From contig CP075494.1 of the NCBI GenBank assembly GCA_021613535.1, forward strand, positions 8,432,001 through 8,496,000: 64,000 bases of DNA, in the 5' to 3' direction. The translations under genes and the position numbers were made by a program. This document shows positions 8,410 to 43,462 of this stretch, one piece after another. Below the pieces are notes generated by a model, which saw only the letters and a program-made list of their open reading frames with translations, did not search any database and was not told the DNA's origin. This DNA is from Adineta vaga. Lineage: Eukaryota > Animalia > Rotifera. Position 1 is the stretch's first letter. Every line of letters starts with the position of its first letter.

Positions 8410-9210
8410 TTTTGAAAAATATACTTGAAGAATAAATCAATAAAATTTTCTTTCTTTTATTTCTACCGTTCGTTTCCTCGGTAAAATATGCATTAAAACT
8501 ATTTGTTGGCATGAAAAGGCCAATACAAAAAAGTAATGTCAATCAATGTCTTTGTCGCTCATATTCAAATGAATTGAAAAAATTAAATTGATGCGTTTTT
8601 ATTTCACGACTACGTTGTCAACGACCGAGTATAAGTTTATAATTGCACAATCAAAAACAAGTTCCAACTTGTATTTGAAATAGTTTAATTTTAGATTGAA
8701 TTTCTAGTAAAATTTATTCGAGAAAATGAATCGCGACTTTCATATTTGACATTAAGAAAATATAATCTGCAAACTAATTAGTTGACTGCATATTTCTCGA
8801 AAACTCTTTATTGTAAAGAAATCCGTCTTTATGTCCCTGAACTATTGTATAGGAGAAAATAAGCAGCCCAATTAATAATTTATTGTGTTTATTTTATAAT
8901 TAAATACTTTGAATTAAAAACACGTTCTATATGAAGATACATAAGAAAATTAAACTTTAATGGGACATACGCTTAGCTGATATAATGCTTGAAGCAGTAG
9001 ACTCATTTGAGATATAAATGTTTGTTTATGAAAAAAACAACTAATATGAGTCCGAAATATTATTGCTTTTCACATATCATACATCCGTTTATGCAACAGA
9101 GGCAAAATTAATTAAATCAATTATCATATCGTATGAAATATAAACAAGAGTAGAATACCTTTATAAATACTCGTACAATATAATCATTCAATAAGTCAGT
9201 AAACAGCACC

Positions 9211-29855: not shown

Positions 29856-32800
29856 TTATTTGTCAGCTTTATCTTTGCTAGCTGATTCTTTCTTTTCCTT
29901 ACGTTTTCGAAGAAATGATGGTGTACGAAATTTCGATTTCTTTTCTTTCTTTGTTGAATCATCGCCAGTTTTACTACCACTTGTACGATTTGGTGAAGCC
30001 TAAATCAATAAGATTAATAAAATATCTATTCGAACGCAAAAATAAATCATGCTATCAATAGGTAGCCAGCGTCCCCTTAGGAAGCAAGAAGAAATCAGGG
30101 TAATCACAATATACTGACCAAACTTTGAGCTCGTACTACTGGTGATAAAACAGCTGGATGCTGTAGAGAAAAATATTGCTCAAGTATATCTTTCTACATA
30201 TTGAAGAAAAAACGATCAACATAGAATCAAACATACTTCTCGACTTGATGCAGCTGATGAGGATGTTGTTGATTTGATAGTATCCGATTTACTTGTTACT
30301 TCTAGAAGTATTCAAGGAAAAAAATGCATGAATATGTAAAGAAAATAAGTTCATAAAGATCTATATCAATTCATACTTGCAGCAGCACTCGCACTGCGTG
30401 AAACGGTTGCACGACTTTCACTCTCACCATCATTACCTTTGAAAGACATGCACATGCTTAATTCATGCATATTTATCATTAAAATTACATACTCTGTCCT
30501 GATAAAGTACGAGGTAATGTGACATTTTTATCCGGAGTTGTCAAACTATGACCACCTGTACTTGTTGTCAATGGTGATCGACCTAAAAATTGAATTGTTA
30601 TTTATATGATATATTTCGATCAAATAAAGGCGCGTGTTTCTCTTGCTCCCTCTCTCTCCATCTGTTTGTAAAGATAGATATACGGATTGAAAAGAAATTG
30701 TGTATAGAAAAGAAAATGATAGAAATAAAAAGTATAGTACAAAAAAGAAAACACGAGATCACAACGATTAATAGCGAATTTCATCGTTTTCGTTGATGGA
30801 TTGAAGTATTTCATGTGTTTCCTGAAACAGTTCGAGCCGATGGAAATGTATTGGCAATTAACATAGCAGAACTGAGACTTGATGATGATGGACTACGATC
30901 AGCAGATTTCGTTGAAAAATTGGAACGTTTCTTCTGTTCTTGTTCATTGTATTCATAGAATTCACGTCTTGTAAGTCCATTTTGAACATTATAATAATTT
31001 CCAGGCGATCTTGATCGATCTCGAACAAGATTTTCATTCGATACTTGTGTTCTTCGGTCGACTAAATGTGATGATGAAGATGATCTTCTCGTTTTCTCTT
31101 CACTTTCTTGAACAAGTCGTTCCGCATGAGTACGTGCCATTTTTTGACATAAATAATTAAAATATTCATTTCTAGATGAAAATTTCAACATTTGACGAAC
31201 AGTATGGGATGTTAATTCAACTTGTTTTGTCGTTAAATATTGTGCAAGATTTTCATAACAAATCTCTTCGCCATGTTGACGTATAAAAACCGGCGCATCT
31301 CGAAGTGTTGCATCTCGAAATGATTGTGGAGTAATTAGTTGTGGTTGTGTTTGTTGAACAGAATTAGAATTGATATTCACCGTCGAGTCAGATTCAGATG
31401 CATATTGAACATAAAAGCGTGTTGTACGATTCGAATTTGATTTCGAATCGTTATCAGGTATAATAATTATACGTGGTCTTCGATGTTCAGATGCTTGTTT
31501 ATGTGTAGAATTAGTTTTCACTGTATTTTTTGTATCAGTTTGATTATCTTTTCTATAAAATATTTGTTGATCATCCATTACTGATGATAAACTATTAGCT
31601 GATTTTGAATGTTGTAATAATGGTAGATTTGAAGAGATACGTGATGGACGTATTGGTGGTTTTAAAATTTGATTCTGTGGAGATGAATCAGAATCAACAG
31701 AACGATCGATTGATTCTTTCGATATTTCAATTGATGTTTTACCCACTGTTATTAATAATCCACCAGATTGATTCGATTGAACTTTTCCTATACGATGTAT
31801 TAAACGTGCAATAATCGTACCCGTACGTTGCGGTGATGTATTAATTGCTTCTATTGAACTAACAGCATCAATTCGAGGTATGACGATTTCATTTGTACCT
31901 AATTTGATAACTAAACGACCAATTTGATCTTGATAGATTGTACCAGCACGATGAACATAATTTGCAAGCATTAATAATGGATCAATAGTATAACCATTGG
32001 TTTCATCAGGTTGCTGAATATCTAATGTTGTTGTTGATGATGATTTTTGTATTAAACGTAAAGATGTATTAAATGGAAAAAGTAATTCTAATTGACGATC
32101 AGTATTTTCAGTTGTTGAAGAAGTTAATGGTAAATGATAGATTTTATTTCTATATGTTAATTGTATGACACCTTCTGATGATGTATTGATTTGACTGGAA
32201 TGATCTAATAACCATTGGGATAATTGTTGACTAGTAAAGGGAAGAATATCATCATTAGGTGAATGAAAAATTTTAATATTCAAAATTGAACGTAGAAGAT
32301 CAGTAGGAATTGTTAAGATTTGATTCGTACATTGAATTCGAACTAATTTCAATCGTTTATTACAAGTAATAAAACCATGATTATACATATATTCAATCGT
32401 CGTATGATATCGAGGAAGTATCTCATTTGAAGTTTCATGTGAAAGCTTGATACATTGATCATTATAAAATAAAAGCCATTGATTGAATTCATTCTGTTTC
32501 AATTGACTATGTTTTTTCAAGATATATTTCATATCTTGTCGTCGATACTTATTCTCTTGAATAAATTGCGTATGTTCAGGAGTTAAATATAATTTTAAGC
32601 CGTCAAATGGATTTTCTAAGACTAATAAATTATTTGTATTATCATATTGAATACCATTTTCATCATTTACATATTCAACAAAATTATCGATAAGATTTTC
32701 ATGAATTGATTCTGTCGTATTCTGTGAATGATTTTCATTCATTTGATTAGATGAAAGTATTTCATGATCAACAGAAAAGTATTTTTCTTTCGGTGTATTG

Positions 32801-35800
32801 TAAACATATGCATAGTTTCCTGTATTAACTTCATAATGAATATTTCCATTTTCAAATAAATAATTCGTAACGATCTGTACATCATCCGATGGAGACATAT
32901 ATTCATATGGGATACGAAGAATTTGTGTATCTTGTCCATCAAATAATTCAATTTCAGTTTCTTGTATATTGTCAAGTAATCGAATTGAACGTATAATTGA
33001 TTGTAACCAAGTTAATTCACTTGTATCTAAGGTTATCTGTTGTTCAGGAAAGATCAATTGTCCAGATGAATATTGAACAAAATTATAAAGAAATAAAATA
33101 CGTGCAATATCATTCATAGTAATTGCTATCGCGTGACTTTTTCTTTCCATATATTCTTCAACATATTCATGTTTGATAAAGATTTGTTGATTAGGATGAT
33201 TTGAATAGATGTGAATATCATTGTCATCATTGATATGAATATGTTGTTGATCATTTAATTGTTGAAGCCATTGAGATAAGATTTGAATATGATTATCATT
33301 GGAAATTTTTAAATGTAAAATTTGATTTTTAAATGTTAAAATGAATGAATGATCATTTTCATCTTCTTCAATTTGACAAATTTCCAATAAAAGTTCAGCT
33401 AATTCATGAGCATTTAAAGTTTCTCCTTGTTGAGATTTAATGCGAAGTGCTGAAAGATATTCATTCGGTATAATAAAATCATCTGTTATGACCAATGAAC
33501 CATTTTCATTATCAAAATGAATATGATTTAATGAACGAAGAATATTTGTTAATCGTTCAATAAGTCCTGATGATGATGATGATGATGATGTAAATAGACG
33601 TTGCGCGTCCAATTCACTATTAGCGATATGAATCAACTTACGGTTATCATCGTATGAAATATAACCAGTCCGCATTAAATATAAGAATATTTCGTTCGAA
33701 GAATTGGTTTGAAATTGTCGAATTTGTTGTGAATCTAATCGACCAAGAAATGGAATAGTTAAACCATCGATATGAAATTCATGAGTATCTAATGATAATA
33801 TAGCATGATCAGTAAGCCATTGTTGAATAAATGGAATTAATTGTTGTGGAATCTTTCGATTGACACGTTTCAATTGTTGAATCCATTGAGCTTGAAGATA
33901 TTTATTACGATAGATTAACCATCGATCAGCTGGTAAAATAATAATTGCTCCATAGATAAATATGACTAATTCATTTGTTTCAGTTTCAAATGGTGAAAGA
34001 TTGTTTTCAATTGCATCCGAATGAATTAAATTAGTATTCGATGATGACGTTCGAATTTGTTGTCCATGAATAGAAAGAATTAATGTTCCATCAGTCGAAC
34101 GTGTTGATCTTGCATTAGTAGAAAAATAATCATTAATAAATTGTTCGTAACTTAATGGATCTAGTTTTGGTTGTTTTTTCGAAGAATCTATTCGATTAGT
34201 TGTCGTACCAGGAGGATGAATAGGTGATTCTTCGATAATTGTGTTTGAATTTGGTCGGAAACGTTGTTGATCATCAGCAGAACCATAACCAGATTCAATA
34301 ATTGTAATTTGACTATCAGTTCGTTTATTTGTTGTTAGTGTCTGTTGTTGTTGATTGAGTGAAGATGCAATTGATTCTTGTGAACCAATTTTTGATGAGG
34401 CAGAATTCGGTGCTGAACCAAATACGCTTACAGATGGTTGATTTTCATGTATAGTATTTACTTCTGTATATTTTGTTATACCGGATGGCACTGTTGATGA
34501 TTTTTGTAGTTGCCATGAGCCAGCTGCAGTCATACTAATGGTTGATTTAAAGCGTTTGGTTTCATATGATGATGCTGATGATGAGAGTTCGGAATCATTT
34601 TGAATTAATGAATGATCAAGATTATTTCGAGTAGAAGTTAATTGTCGCTCAAATTCTTTCAATTGATCACGTTGAGATGTTGTTAAACTTAACCAAAAGA
34701 TTTCATTCCATTGCCAAGTATGACCATCCTATGATGCGTATAAAATATGTTAGATATAAGAACAAGAAAGTGAACTGCTCAATAGGAGATGCCAGATGGT
34801 GCATTGTATATGAAAAGAAATATCTGAATAGCTTCTCAGTGGTTGATTTTTTCATTTGAAAGTAATTATTTAGAAATCTTATTAGATTGTCAATCGACAT
34901 GTTACAATTTCATTTTCAAGTCAATATTTCAAAAATGACTCAAGGCATAAAATAAGATCGTATGAATTCGTGATATTTACCGGCAAATAATGTCCAACAT
35001 CATCAAGATTTTTCAATTGTTTGCCAGTAATCTGTCGTATTTGATCAAGTTGAGTTGGAACAGTTATTTGTTTTGTAGAAGCTGTGGGATTTATTTTATC
35101 TTGAATAACTTTTGCTGGTTCAGCATGATGAATACCTGACGAATTCGTGTCTTTAATACGAAATCGAATTTCATCGCCATAACGTGTTGGTTTTTCTTCA
35201 GGTTCCTTTCGTCGATCTTGACTAATTGGACTACTTATCGTTGATGAGTCAGATGAACGAGAAATTTCTTGTTCAAACTTTGAGCGTAATGTATCGACTC
35301 GATTTGTTGTGGTATTTCCTTGAATTTCGGATTGATTCAATTGTGTTTTAATCCATTTCGATTGATTAATCGGTCGATAATCAAATCGTTGTAATTGTTC
35401 GCGAACAATTTGAGGATCAACATTTGTTGATTTTGTTTGTTCTTTGATCTGTGTTCGAGGAATAATGGCAGGTGGAGTTGTTGATTCATCACTTAAACTA
35501 TTTGTTGTTGAAGGTGGTATAACATGCACTAATTGTTCAGAAAATTGTACACGTGATGCACGTTTTTCTTCGTCATTTTCATATTGAACATCTAATATTA
35601 TAACGTCATCTGGTACAGGTGGCCAACTAGATACTCGTTGGTTTTCTTGTTTAATTGGTGTACTCGTTAATAATGATTGATTATTTCGTACATCAAAACT
35701 TAAATTTGATGTACGATCCGAATCTATTTCTCCATCTTGAGCGATTACAGTAGTTACTGATGATGATGAAGATGAAGATGTTCGATTATGTTCTTTGTCC

Positions 35801-38800
35801 ACTTGTACTACATATTCTTCATAGGAATATTTGGATTCTTCGAGTAATTCATTTGGTAATGCATGTTGATCACCGATTGTATTCGATAGATTTTGACTAC
35901 CGGAATGAATTTTTACATGTTGATCATATTTCACATTGGCATTTTGATTTCTATCGATAATTAATGTTGAACCATAAGTTGATAAAGATGGTGATGTCTG
36001 AGTAGACCTTGATGACAATAATGGATCATATGCACCACGATAACGTACCGGTTGTCGATCTTGTTGTTCAACAAATATGCATTTATCATTTGTTGAAGGA
36101 TTTTTTGGATCTAAACTTGGATAATAAACGGATAATAATTGAGTTTCCGCAAAAGATGGAACAGGTTTTGTCGGTTGACTTTCTTGATTTGTTTGTGTTT
36201 GAGAGGTACGTCGAATGGTAGTGGATAGTAATGGTGATGAGGGTGTAATACTTAGAGGTAAAGTATGTTCACTCGTTTGTTCTGAACTACGAATTAAAAC
36301 TCGTGATAATGATTCATCCGATGAGGATGTGCGAAAAGTTTGTTGTTGTTGTTGTTGCATTGAAAACTATAAAACAAAATATTGATTGAATATATTTCAA
36401 TGCTTTTTTCTTTTTATAGCATATAGACATATTTAAATCATCCCTACCACCTTTTATTCTCTTGCTTCTTCTTTTTTTTCTTTAAGAACTTGTCGTGTTC
36501 TTTTCCTTTCCTCATTTTACTAAGCTAACACTACTTCAACGAATAGTCAGGATTAGTTCTTCTCTCGCAACGATGTTAAAGTAAAAGAAGAAGAAGAAGG
36601 AAGAGGAAAAAAATTTGCAGTGTCATGTCAAAATTAGAACTGAAAGAATACAATTGTTAGAACCATTTTTTCTTCTTTTTTTCTCTTTCTTATGAAATCA
36701 TAGAAATATTTGGATTATTTTCCCGATCGATGAAACCTTCAAAAAACAGATCGAACTACTCGTACTCACCACATTCAGGTTAAATATTTATATATCTGAA
36801 TAAAATAATAATAAAAAGTGAAAGCTCGATGGTACTTGACACTTTATCTGACCGTCAATAGTCTAGAAGAAGTATTCACTATTATCTTTTTTTTTGTTCT
36901 CTCTTTCTACTTTAAAATAAGTCTTCACTTTTTTTTTGATCAAAAGAAACTTTCTTACCTTTATTTGATATTGGATACTTGTTAACTTGTTCTTGCCATA
37001 TTTATTCGATTCCAATATGAATATATATTTTCAATGATGAATCATAAAAAATGATGCATAGCGAGTATATGCCGGTAACATAAATGACATTTTTTTTTTG
37101 TTGAGTAAAGACAAGAGGAAGAAGAAGAAGAAGCGAAAGAACAAAAAAAACGAGAAAAAAAAACGTGAAGAACAAGAGACATTAAACTCGTGTTGATCTT
37201 GGAAGAAGTGGGGGCACGAGAGAATGAATCACGTTCTGTATACTACCTAAGATTCTTTTTTTGTGCCAAAATGTTTGATTCATAATTACAATGAATCATC
37301 ATCAGATGAGGAGGAGAGAGAGAGAGAGAGCGAAGTACATTTGACCGCGTTATACTTACCTCGACTATCATTGTGATCATCATATTGAGAATCACCACCT
37401 ACAAAACAAATAATCTCAATTAGTTGATTGTGTTCGTTAACAATAGAATAGAAATGGAGAATTCATGCTTTTGAAAGAGTAAATAGGGGATTGAAGATAT
37501 GATCAAATTTCTTTAGAAAATCGTTGCAATAGATAAAAGATAAATAGATTTCAAGGTGGCTGAGAATAGGTCATTATTAGGAAGTTTCATAAGGAAAATA
37601 AAAGCAAGAGATTCGTGCAGAATGTTGTTAAATGAAATGAAAAGAATCGAATAAAACAAGTCAAACAGAAGTGTTCTAAGTTTGGATATCTGTTTAATTC
37701 ATTGTATTTAATTTTGAATAGAAAAAGAAGAAGGCAGATATTATTCTTAATTTAAATGTAGGAAATCTTTGTAATAAATCTCCATGGCGTGTGTTGTTTT
37801 CTAATTAACATTCAACACTTTTAAAAACACCCCTCAAGTGAAACCAATTATTAATTCAACGTACATACACGGACAAGGTTTTCATTTGCCTGAATACCTT
37901 TACTTTCTCTTTCTAATCAATACTTGTTATTGATCGTTATGTTGTACGGAAAGTATATGTTAGAAAGTCTCTTCCGTTCTTATTCATACAGGCAGGTAAA
38001 GAAAATTTAAGCATGCTTATTAACTCCAAGCAAGAAAAAATAAGTCTGCTGCACACCGGTGCGAGTTATGTTAGAAGATTTTGTCTGTAAATTTTTGCTC
38101 CCTAATGAAAATAAGGAAAAAACAATCACAGAAGTGAATCCCTGTATTGTGGTGAATAGTTTTAAGCGATAAATATATACCCTTTCGAATTTCATCCAAA
38201 AGTGCATTTTTCTTAAATGCTGAATGAAGAAAATATGTATGAGAAGAATACAAACTAATAATCGATGATTTTCAACAGACCTTGTTCTCGCATTTGATTT
38301 TGTTCCACTTCTCGTTTATATTTTTCGATTTCTTGATTATCCATATGAGCAAATGGATTTTGAGCGTAATAGGTTTTATAAACAATAGCATTGTTTTGTT
38401 GATCACGTTTAATAATACCTTTTGATGCTGCACCAACAACAACGACAGCTTCTGTTGTAGGTTGATGAGGATCCTAAGAAAATTTAAAAAAAAATTCATT
38501 TCAACATTTTTTATTCTAATTCAATCAATACGAAATCCTCTTTCTTACTTTCATTTGTGTAGCATCATCCCACGAAGCATTATCAAGAAGTTTAGATTGA
38601 TAACCAGCAGATACTTTTTCATTAAAACGATCTTCTTTCATTTGTTTTTGGTGAGTTTTTAATAGTTTAGGATCAACATTACTCGGAGCAAATTGATGTT
38701 TTGTATCGATTTTTATTGGAGTCGAATGTTTTAATCCAGTATCTGGTACCCACTAAAAAAAATTTATTATACAATTGTATCGATCTAGTGTCCAATGTAA

Positions 38801-41160: not shown

Positions 41161-43462
41161 TTAATTTTTGTCAATAAAACGAATTAACGGTTCACGATAA
41201 ATATAACCAGTATGATAACCCTGAAATAAACAAACAAAGACGAATTGTAATTTTAATCCAAACGATGCAATTTAAGTCTTCTCCTCAACTATCAACATAA
41301 TGTTTTCTCAAGATAGAAATACAAATAAATAAATTCTGCAACGAAATATCATTAAGTCATTTATAGTCTGATTTGCGAATCTTTAATATCAATCAAAATA
41401 CTTCTTTCTCTCTAAGTTATCTCACAATTAATTCAAAAGATAAACATACTGCTCTATCTAAAACGATCATTAATGTTGACCATTCAAGTTCACCAACTGC
41501 CCATTTAACATCTGTTGTGTTAACTCCACCACCACCTGCGCCAACAGTATTTGTTACCTAAAAATCAATGGAATAGAAAATCGATTTTATTCTTTCAAAT
41601 ACTATTGATATTTACTTGTTTTGCTGATTGATCTGATGAGATAATTAAATTATCAATACCCATTGAAACTGCTCTTAGTTGTGATTCGCATGCTAAGATC
41701 AAATGAAATATTACATGCCATGCTTCTTCAACACTTGTACCACAAGCCAATATTCCATGATTTGGAAGAATCAAAACTTTAGCTGTTGATTGTTGAATAT
41801 TCTCATCAAGAGATAATCGATTTGTAACTAAATCTATCTGTATTTCATGCGTAGTTGCTTGTCCACATATAAGTGCTTCTTGACTAAGTCCTAAAAGACC
41901 ACATTTCATGGCGGATACAGCTGTGACAGCTGGGGTCTGAACATGAATGATACAATTTATATCTGGACGGTGTTTATAAACAGATGAATATAACGAAAAA
42001 CTAAGTGCATTAACACCAAATGTTGTACTACCGGGATCAATTCTTGAGCCTGTGGAGAGAGAGAAAAAAAAGTAACGATCTGTTATAAATTGTTAATTTT
42101 AATAAATTTTACCATTCGCATCAATTTTTACTAACGATGAACCAGTGACTTCATGAAAACCTAATCCAATAGGTTTCATAAGAAATTGATCTGTACTATT
42201 ATTCACACGGACCTGAAAGAAAATTTCTTGAAAAGTTTATATTCGGATAGAATCTTACAGAAACATGGTTATAACATGTACTATAATTCCAACCATAAAG
42301 ATCAATAACACGATAAAGTGAAGCTAATTTACATCGTAAATAACGTTCATTTTTAACATATGACCGACTATCGATACCGCGTATATCATTAACGGGTAGG
42401 ACAGGACCTAAAATCGAAAGTTTTAATTGTATTTTTTCAATACAATATTCAATTTTACCTTTACAAACAGTTGCATCAAGTTTAGTTATTGGTAAGAGTA
42501 AATTCGAAAGTGTTTCAACGGATTCTTTATTTCCGTCACTGATCAATAAATTGGTTAATTCAGTATGAAATTCAGGTGAATTCAATAATGTTGTTGCTGA
42601 AGGACGATCTATATAATGAATGAATACTAGAGAATGATATCCTATTACAACGTTAACTATTAGAGAGGATTCTAGCTATTTAACCTTCGATATTAATGAT
42701 ACTATGGAAATTGATACAATAAACACGAAATACAATTTCATCGTCTAAACTCGTTCATCTCAATACCTCTAAAAAAAATAATTGATCACTTCTGAGCGAA
42801 GACTATACTCGTTATTTAACCCTATTGAGATTAGAGAGAGCATAAAATTGTATACATGTCTTATTCAAAAGTATTGGAGGCCAAATGCAAAGAACATACT
42901 TGAACCTGATTTTATATATAGATATATATAAAGATATAGCAATATATAAGGATAAAAGAAAATACCTCAATAGTTTTATCGAAAACTCATTATTACAACT
43001 AACTATAGATTCGATATATAAGATCATCGATTCAATAGGGACAGACTTAATGAGTCATCAAGAATTTGATGTATGAAGACGTGAGCTATTTCACAGATAT
43101 TCATATAACAAGAAACTATTCTGTCGTCTTTTTGACATGAAATAACAACAATTGAGAAGGCCATGTGTTCATCGCGTAATATACACTCGATATAAAGACG
43201 GTTATTTATTGGATTACGACCTTTTATATCCATTCCGTTTCGATGGTAAGAAAATTGTTTCAATATGTAATATTCTCATAGCTATATAAGAAGCGTATCT
43301 AACAGATATTCTGTCAATCTTCTATGATTCATTGAAGTTCAATGTTTAATTACAATATCGATATACAACCTCCCTTTTTCCTTCTTTCTTCAAATAAATA
43401 AATCTAGACAAATATTTTTATTTACCATTCAACGTTGTTTGATTCTCACCTTCACCCGGCAT
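41161..43462 (-). CDS. Short head-only adducin paralog (class II aldolase-like domain, no tail or MARCKS domain)
   Basis: Spliced MPGE|DRPSATTLLNSPEF...PVNDIRGIDS...[17 protein letters not shown]...[10 protein letters not shown]...LPNHGILACG...WAVGELEW...|GYHTGYIYREPLIRFIDKN*. Confidence 0.82.

Follow-up and report, generated by a model that had tools for sequence, protein, structure and literature searches.

A large protein-coding gene probably nested on the same strand within an adducin intron of bdelloid rotifers

The window analysed here is a stretch of 64,000 nucleotides (nt) from a chromosome-scale contig of the bdelloid rotifer Adineta vaga (C5:8432001–8496000; G+C content ~31%). It carries two tandem adducin-type genes on its minus strand, both encoding an Aldolase_II head domain; unless another sequence is named, positions below are those of the window, and the features described lie on its minus strand. 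The downstream gene spans ~40971–29859, and its identity as an adducin gene is confirmed by Aldolase_II matches. Between a 39-nt mini-exon (37360–37398) and the exons for the protein tail lies an adducin intron of 6,777 nt (30583–37359), inside which two giant exons encode a protein of 1765 amino acids (aa). We conclude that these exons very probably constitute an independent protein-coding gene, nested in the adducin intron in the same orientation as its host.

Two blocks of the minus strand, 34924–36366 and 30814–34728, are free of stop codons and delimit the giant open reading frames (ORFs). The first giant exon (34981–36366; 460 codons), supported by sequence and by RNA contigs, follows an acceptor AG at 36368–36367 and has a 6-nt leader ahead of the ATG at 36360–36358; an in-frame TAG upstream of this ATG overlaps the acceptor AG. 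Its donor, 34981/GTAAAT (a slash marks the splice junction), and the following acceptor, ATAG/34728, bound a GT..AG intron of 252 nt (34729–34980) and join the two exons in frame, giving 460 + 1305 = 1765 aa. The second exon (30811–34728; 1305 codons and a TGA at 30813–30811) contains tandem alpha+beta3 modules (~34150–31700), a conserved C-terminal region and a conserved end. It is supported by colinear RNA contigs, by dN/dS values (ratios of nonsynonymous to synonymous substitution rates) of 0.13–0.26 and by structure models.

Assembled contigs of four sequencing runs were aligned on 30485–36484, with 36485–37398 lying outside the aligned stretch. One run (X6) is DNA; the other three (X1, X8 and X10) each stem from a different study and were identified as RNA because they contain a spliced form that X6 lacks. 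The joint 34727/34980, at which the 252 nt are skipped, is present in all three RNA runs and absent from X6, whose contig is colinear at this place. RNA contigs tile the giant ORF without a break from 36332 down to 30697 (X1, X8) or 30660 (X10). They cover the first exon up to a masked CAA repeat at 36333–36365, are missing from 36367–36484, and at the other end continue through the TGA at 30811 to finish ~114–151 nt past the stop. The giant ORFs genuinely exist: they are expressed, their intron is removed at the predicted sites and they are read to their own stop, and the adducin mRNA skips them.

The skipping is seen at 30584, where a loose end of the RNA contigs, up to 173 nt long and found in all three RNA runs, reads in reverse complement as TTCTCAATATGATGATCACAATGATAGTCG, that is, as the adducin mini-exon. 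The mini-exon is thus attached to 30582, and the canonical adducin mRNA therefore skips the whole 6,777-nt intron. The mini-exon, the final host exon ahead of the long intron, is supported by sequence and by this loose end; it has a phase-1 donor (G/GTAAGT), which the adducin contig crosses into the tail exon unbranched. A second loose end, at 30490, corresponds to the next adducin tail exon. The first tail exon (30493–30582; ending ...SGQS), defined by the sequence and by the two loose ends in X1, X8 and X10, is accordingly joined to the mini-exon upstream and to the next tail exon (from 30436) downstream. The last adducin exon (29859–29999), identified in the sequence and kept in all compared loci, carries a MARCKS-related basic segment and the stop. 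Neither a head-to-giant joint (37360 to 36366) nor a giant-to-tail joint (30871 to 30582) was assembled in the three RNA runs, and the mini-exon is the sole partner seen for 30582.

Much of this architecture had been proposed in a preliminary description made from the DNA sequence itself, and sequence and RNA now bear it out: the two giant exons in a 6.8-kb intron, with their in-frame 1765 aa and own TGA at 30811; the direct splice of the mini-exon to 30582; the MARCKS-like basic end of the adducin tail; and the junction 34981 to 34728, put forward there as a check and present in the three RNA runs. The mismatch in phase that it pointed out, between the adducin mini-exon donor (phase 1) and the giant acceptor at 36366 (phase 0), is real as well. 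A further suggestion, that the 4-nt homopolymer at 36363–36366 hides an indel and that removal of one base would fuse the adducin and giant frames, did not hold. A DNA contig of 2013 (X6, record 22) spans 34209–36484 gap-free with no indels listed. Because this independent contig shows no gap at the homopolymer, the TTTT run is genuine, and a 1-nt "repair" fusing the two frames therefore lacks support.

The comparison with other rotifer genomes and with the ohnolog, likewise called for in the preliminary description, revealed the same nesting throughout. The order of adducin head exons, mini-exon, giant ORFs and tail exons is identical in every locus examined: in the A. vaga C2 ohnolog, whose second giant exon is an open frame of 2358 codons, in A. 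ricciae (L017) and Rotaria magnacalcarata (L018), and in L016 and L015, two Logan genomic contigs of other rotifers. We had considered L015 and L016 as transcripts of relatives and rejected this, the contigs being genomic. The mini-exon is conserved in C2, A. ricciae, R. magnacalcarata and L016. Adducin-tail sequence also follows the ORF in P0041, a protein close to the Didymodactylos protein P0020. With the same nesting in all loci, the arrangement is therefore older than the bdelloid genome duplication and the Adineta/Rotaria split. In the A. vaga genome, the family is represented by the locus itself, the syntenic ohnolog and one 565-aa fragment only.

Two observations concern these additional A. 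vaga copies. In the C2 ohnolog (L010:7024–9164; G000:C2:9327024–9329164, minus strand), the N-terminal part of the ORF is split over two overlapping frames (MHQQNQ... at 9164–8835 and a second one at 8961–7024) with no plausible intron between them, the result of a true frameshift in the C2 copy or of an assembly indel. The fragment (L014:2757–4451; G000:C4:9372757–9374451, minus strand) is a stand-alone frame of 565 codons that matches the C2-type protein in its middle repeat modules only, at 37–46% identity. Adducin exons are absent nearby, and the frame adjoins an unrelated ORF of 351 codons; it may have arisen by partial duplication or be a short family member in its own right.

Around the start of the giant ORF, an ATG stands 5–6 nt past the acceptor in all five loci compared, and the mini-exon donor is in phase 1 in every one of them. 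Read from the adducin donor, the acceptor of the C5 locus studied here (ag/ttttcaATG) leads out of frame, that of A. ricciae (ag/tgtgaaATG) brings a TGA into the donor frame, those of C2 and R. magnacalcarata (both ag/tttaaATG) bring an in-frame TAA, and that of L016 (ag/ctgaaATG) is open. The frame from the adducin donor is thus blocked or shifted before the ATG in four of the five loci; what is conserved is the ATG and not the open frame.

The 5′ end of the giant transcript can be approached from the length of its contigs, which reach 146 nt (X8) and 148 nt (X10) past 36332. Less the 34 nt to the acceptor, this leaves an upstream exon of ~112–114 nt. Because nothing aligns on 36367–36484, the acceptor at 36366 must be used, and only this short exon stands before it. 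In the k-mer assembly each word occurs in one contig only; since the words of the mini-exon are already taken up by the adducin contig, the overhang is probably not made of the mini-exon and the upstream adducin exon. It also far exceeds the 23-nt spliced leader of bdelloids.

Between the mini-exon and the giant acceptor lies an unusually well conserved stretch of ~1 kb, with 80.6% identity to A. ricciae (979 nt) and 62.5% to Rotaria (969 nt); for comparison, the 252-nt intron of the nested gene has 66.5% identity to A. ricciae and is unalignable with Rotaria. Within this stretch, alignment, blastn and the overhang length point to a conserved non-coding block (36959–37187), which comprises a pyrimidine tract, the element AAAAAAA..ATGTCATTT (~37098–37082) and a donor AAAG/GTAAG at 36959/36958. 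In a three-way alignment of C5, C2 and L016, the element is invariant and the donor is common to all. We consider the block a putative core promoter with the first 5′ untranslated region (UTR) exon of the nested gene. The overhang predicted from a start near 37085 is slightly longer than the one observed. Splice-like signals (AG/ATATAT...AATGTG/GTGAGT) suggest a putative second 5′UTR exon of 26 nt (36770–36795), one already put forward in the preliminary description. Most likely, the nested gene has its own promoter and 5′UTR exon(s) within this conserved upstream kilobase. A 37-nt element just downstream of the putative 26-nt exon (36730–36766, minus strand; GAGTAGTT..CTGTT..TTGAAGGTTTCAT) is 81% identical to the C2 ohnolog amid diverged flanks and could be regulatory or part of an alternative 5′ exon.

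At the opposite end, the RNA contigs stop without a loose end at 30697 (X1, X8) or 30660 (X10), from which a putative 3′UTR of 30660–30810 can be drawn; by depth arithmetic over the first two bins, ~30585–30659 is bare of RNA contigs. We infer that the nested gene has its own 3′ end ahead of the next adducin exon, at the resolution of contigs, which cannot define a poly(A) site. RNA and DNA contigs both break at 30696/30697, beside an A-rich tandem repeat of 15-nt units (30702–30747). This break probably reflects an allelic length difference and complicates the placing of the nested-gene 3′ end from assemblies.

Public annotation treats the locus differently. The NCBI model I4U23_024599 (P0001, 1889 aa) begins with the ATG at 36360, leaves the giant ORF at CTCA/GTTCTG (30871) and enters the adducin tail exons. 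Similar giant-plus-tail models exist in A. ricciae, in two Rotaria species and as P0041, with an exit residue that differs between the models; other public models terminate at the ORF's own stop. The annotated adducins are cut short, at 601 aa in A. ricciae and 593 aa in R. magnacalcarata, because in these two species the tail has been assigned to the giant ORF. In all three RNA runs, the contigs are colinear and unbranched through the annotated donor at 30871, and the peptide encoded beyond it (..S.MLIANTFP..) is conserved family-wide, A. ricciae included when the donor is read through. Because the RNA passes straight through 30871 and the peptide downstream of it is conserved, I4U23_024599 and the models like it are probably annotation merge artefacts.

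The encoded protein bears the marks of selection. By the Nei–Gojobori method, applied to a codon alignment of the two joined giant exons with A. ricciae, dN/dS is 0.16 overall, 0.17 in the N-terminal third, 0.13 in the repeats and 0.26 in the C-terminal part, values that show the giant ORF to be under purifying selection. Domain searches were run on the individual exons and on the database model P0001 as returned. Pfam and NCBIfam gave no match on the two exons, and PDB sequence profiles returned nothing below an E-value of 0.8 for the repeat and C-terminal regions. An exhaustive search of 1.84 billion cluster representatives with a repeat-region profile retrieved 41 proteins. Every named one belongs to Adineta, Rotaria or Didymodactylos; judged by this search, the family is restricted to bdelloid rotifers. 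P0055 was rejected as a relative, being a low-complexity tandem-repeat protein that matches one 30-residue stretch.

The N-terminal third is rich in Ser, Thr and Gln, contains conserved short motifs and is probably disordered. Residues ~650–1480 comprise at least 14 recognisable units of ~50 residues, each with a helix of the type LxxWLxxxG and then three short strands; a conserved C-terminal segment and a C-terminal peptide come after these modules. AlphaFold modelled ~16 helix+EEE units with a mean predicted local distance difference test score (pLDDT) of 74 and a low predicted template modelling score (pTM), which suggests a beads-on-a-string arrangement. The pair of units with the strongest conservation (P0001 residues 1376–1472) was modelled with a pLDDT of 95 and a pTM of 0.85. 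Fold searches with this two-module model brought up nothing convincing: VIA reached Z 4.3 at best, Foldseek E-values were above 0.1 and Atlas TM-scores below 0.5. The top hit, KTSC at Z 4.3, was rejected as lying inside the stated noise range of the search. Foldseek with an 841-residue model, a multi-domain model with a pTM of 0.32, gave noise only, and the ESM Atlas feature search gave no usable match for the C-terminal region. In its sequence, the protein has no signal peptide-like N-terminus, no hydrophobic or membrane segment and no catalytic signature. From these features it may be a large intracellular scaffold or structural protein.

The independent nested gene, one of the two explanations offered in the preliminary description, agrees with all the evidence and gains support from the overhang of ~112–114 nt, the conserved kilobase upstream and the donor AAAG/GTAAG at 36959. 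Several points weigh against it nevertheless. We infer the identity of the 5′ exon and the existence of a separate promoter from overhang length, k-mer logic and conservation; the sequence leading up to the contig ends shows no canonical AATAAA; in four public gene models the giant ORF is fused to the adducin tail; and in three of the five loci (C2, Rotaria and L016) the 5-nt spacing between acceptor and ATG is in phase with the adducin donor, L016 being fully open. Moreover, Logan contigs lose rare variants, so that minor head-to-giant or giant-to-tail isoforms are possible. The other explanation offered in the preliminary description was a MARCKS-less adducin of ~2400 aa, resembling Ovhts of Drosophila, in which the head and neck exons are spliced to 36366, whether with the assembly as it stands or once one nucleotide in it is corrected. 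The strand and position of the ORF, which are those of an alternative terminal exon, the in-phase spacing just mentioned and the precedent of Drosophila hts speak for such a protein. We nevertheless find it very unlikely and do not retain it: the head-to-giant joint is missing from three RNA sets in which the adducin contig runs unbranched into the tail exon, the TTTT run is upheld by independent DNA, a stop or frame shift stands between acceptor and conserved ATG in four of five loci, and the overhang of ~112–114 nt stops at the same place in two studies. It is quite improbable, too, that an internal promoter drives an isoform sharing the adducin tail, with the donor at 30871 spliced to 30582 to yield 1889 aa and a MARCKS end. 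This is how the public models of A. vaga, A. ricciae and two Rotaria species and P0041 end, and the donor CTCA/GTTCTG is in phase 1, the same as adducin's, which makes the join in phase; but the RNA contigs of three runs pass both 30871 and the stop unbranched and without a joint to 30582, the donor is weak, the residue predicted at the junction varies by species, and the peptide past the donor is conserved across the family.

The nested transcript might also lack a promoter of its own and be cut from the adducin pre-mRNA, with the 23-nt spliced leader added at 36366 and polyadenylation at ~30660. In bdelloids, a leader of this length is trans-spliced onto more than half of mRNAs (PMC1925144), and an acceptor 6 nt ahead of the ATG is typical for trans-splice sites; however, an overhang of ~112–114 nt in two studies is much longer than 23 nt, and a cis donor (AAAG/GTAAG), itself conserved, closes the conserved block upstream, which leaves this processing route very improbable. 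Finally, a large intronic ORF without known domains could be a transposon or viral relic, or a frame without function. Against this stand the occurrence of a single syntenic locus in each subgenome, which keeps its adducin position across bdelloid families, a dN/dS of 0.16, and splicing and expression. The preliminary description had named a transposon match or a lack of transcripts as outcomes that would speak against a gene; no transposon-type or other mobile-element domain and no terminal repeats were found, and the ORF is present in three RNA runs. We regard this origin as next to impossible.

For the independent nested gene, we therefore propose the following course of expression. The adducin pre-mRNA is spliced over the whole nested gene, from 37360 to 30582, as the RNA contigs record. 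The nested gene would start at its own promoter in the conserved ~1 kb downstream of the mini-exon, and its short 5′UTR would be spliced to the acceptor at 36366, with translation from the ATG at 36360. Removal of the 252-nt intron and termination at the TGA at 30811 would follow, both of them observed, and the transcript would end ~115–150 nt past the stop, ahead of the next adducin exon, as placed at the contig level.

A bolder idea, which we regard as unlikely, is that the pairing of adducin and the giant protein is a functional unit as old as the bdelloids, a split counterpart of fly Ovhts with minor transcripts running from the mini-exon to the giant exon. If so, adducin and the giant protein would act together, either in the membrane skeleton or in syncytial and germline structures of the rotifer. 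The minor joins would produce either a tail-less adducin that stops just past the junction (C2, Rotaria, A. ricciae) or an adducin–giant polyprotein (L016), and the balance of host splicing versus nested transcription would regulate the MARCKS tail of adducin.

Two further observations concern the host and its neighbour. Immediately upstream of the adducin gene, in tandem, lies the shorter second adducin-like gene with Aldolase_II (41164–42675, minus strand); A. ricciae and R. magnacalcarata have a counterpart of ~345 aa in the corresponding position, and none was found beside the C2 ohnolog. Within the adducin gene, ~300 nt following exon 38473–38258 (37942–38250, minus strand) are conserved, with 76% identity to A. 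ricciae and 72% to R. magnacalcarata. They form the start of an 859-nt adducin intron (38257–37399), and read-through of the donor at 38258 reaches a stop, where the annotated adducin models of 601 and 593 aa end. This block may be the 3′UTR of a short tail-less adducin isoform, comparable to ShAdd of the fly.

The nested-gene interpretation would correct a systematic error in bdelloid annotation, which leaves adducin at ~600 aa and moves its regulatory MARCKS tail to an unrelated protein of 1765 aa. It would also describe an unusually stable case of same-strand nesting, well suited to studying how transcription of a host gene proceeds past a promoter and a poly(A) site that lie within it. The protein itself would add a bdelloid-restricted family built on a confidently modelled module of ~50 residues, one helix plus three strands, with no recognisable relatives, and thus a candidate lineage-specific structural protein. 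A literature search found no paper that mentions adducin together with bdelloids.

The closest known system is Drosophila hts, in which a lineage-specific terminal exon (HtsRC) is translated within the adducin polyprotein Ovhts and then cleaved off (bioRxiv 10.1101/2020.04.24.060186). In both loci, a coding exon that is large, confined to one lineage and of unknown fold lies on the adducin strand as an alternative to the MARCKS-tail exons, and in both annotators confuse an independent transcript with a part of the adducin transcript. However, the fly exon is in frame with the adducin head, whereas the bdelloid locus shows no head junction, has the frame blocked in most loci, and has an ORF with its own conserved ATG, intron and stop and, as it appears, its own 5′ exon(s) and 3′ end. 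The 41 matches of the repeat profile are members of this family or fragments of them, with no insect protein among them, so that a sequence relation to HtsRC is not apparent from this search, which used the repeat-region profile only, with no direct comparison to HtsRC.

Giant ankyrin and other giant-exon cytoskeletal isoforms offer a second parallel: an exon of several kilobases, in a membrane-skeleton gene, that encodes a repetitive or disordered polypeptide. Those exons, however, are spliced internally and in frame into the host protein, while the bdelloid exon is unjoined to its host on either side in the assembled RNA.

The bdelloid locus fits the class of same-strand nested genes of animals, in which a complete coding unit sits in a host intron and the host mRNA is spliced over it; most described nested genes lie on the strand opposite to their host. 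Within this class it is unusual for its very large size, with 5.5 kb of exon ending ~80–115 nt before the next host exon, and for a position shared by the two ohnologs and by no fewer than two bdelloid families.

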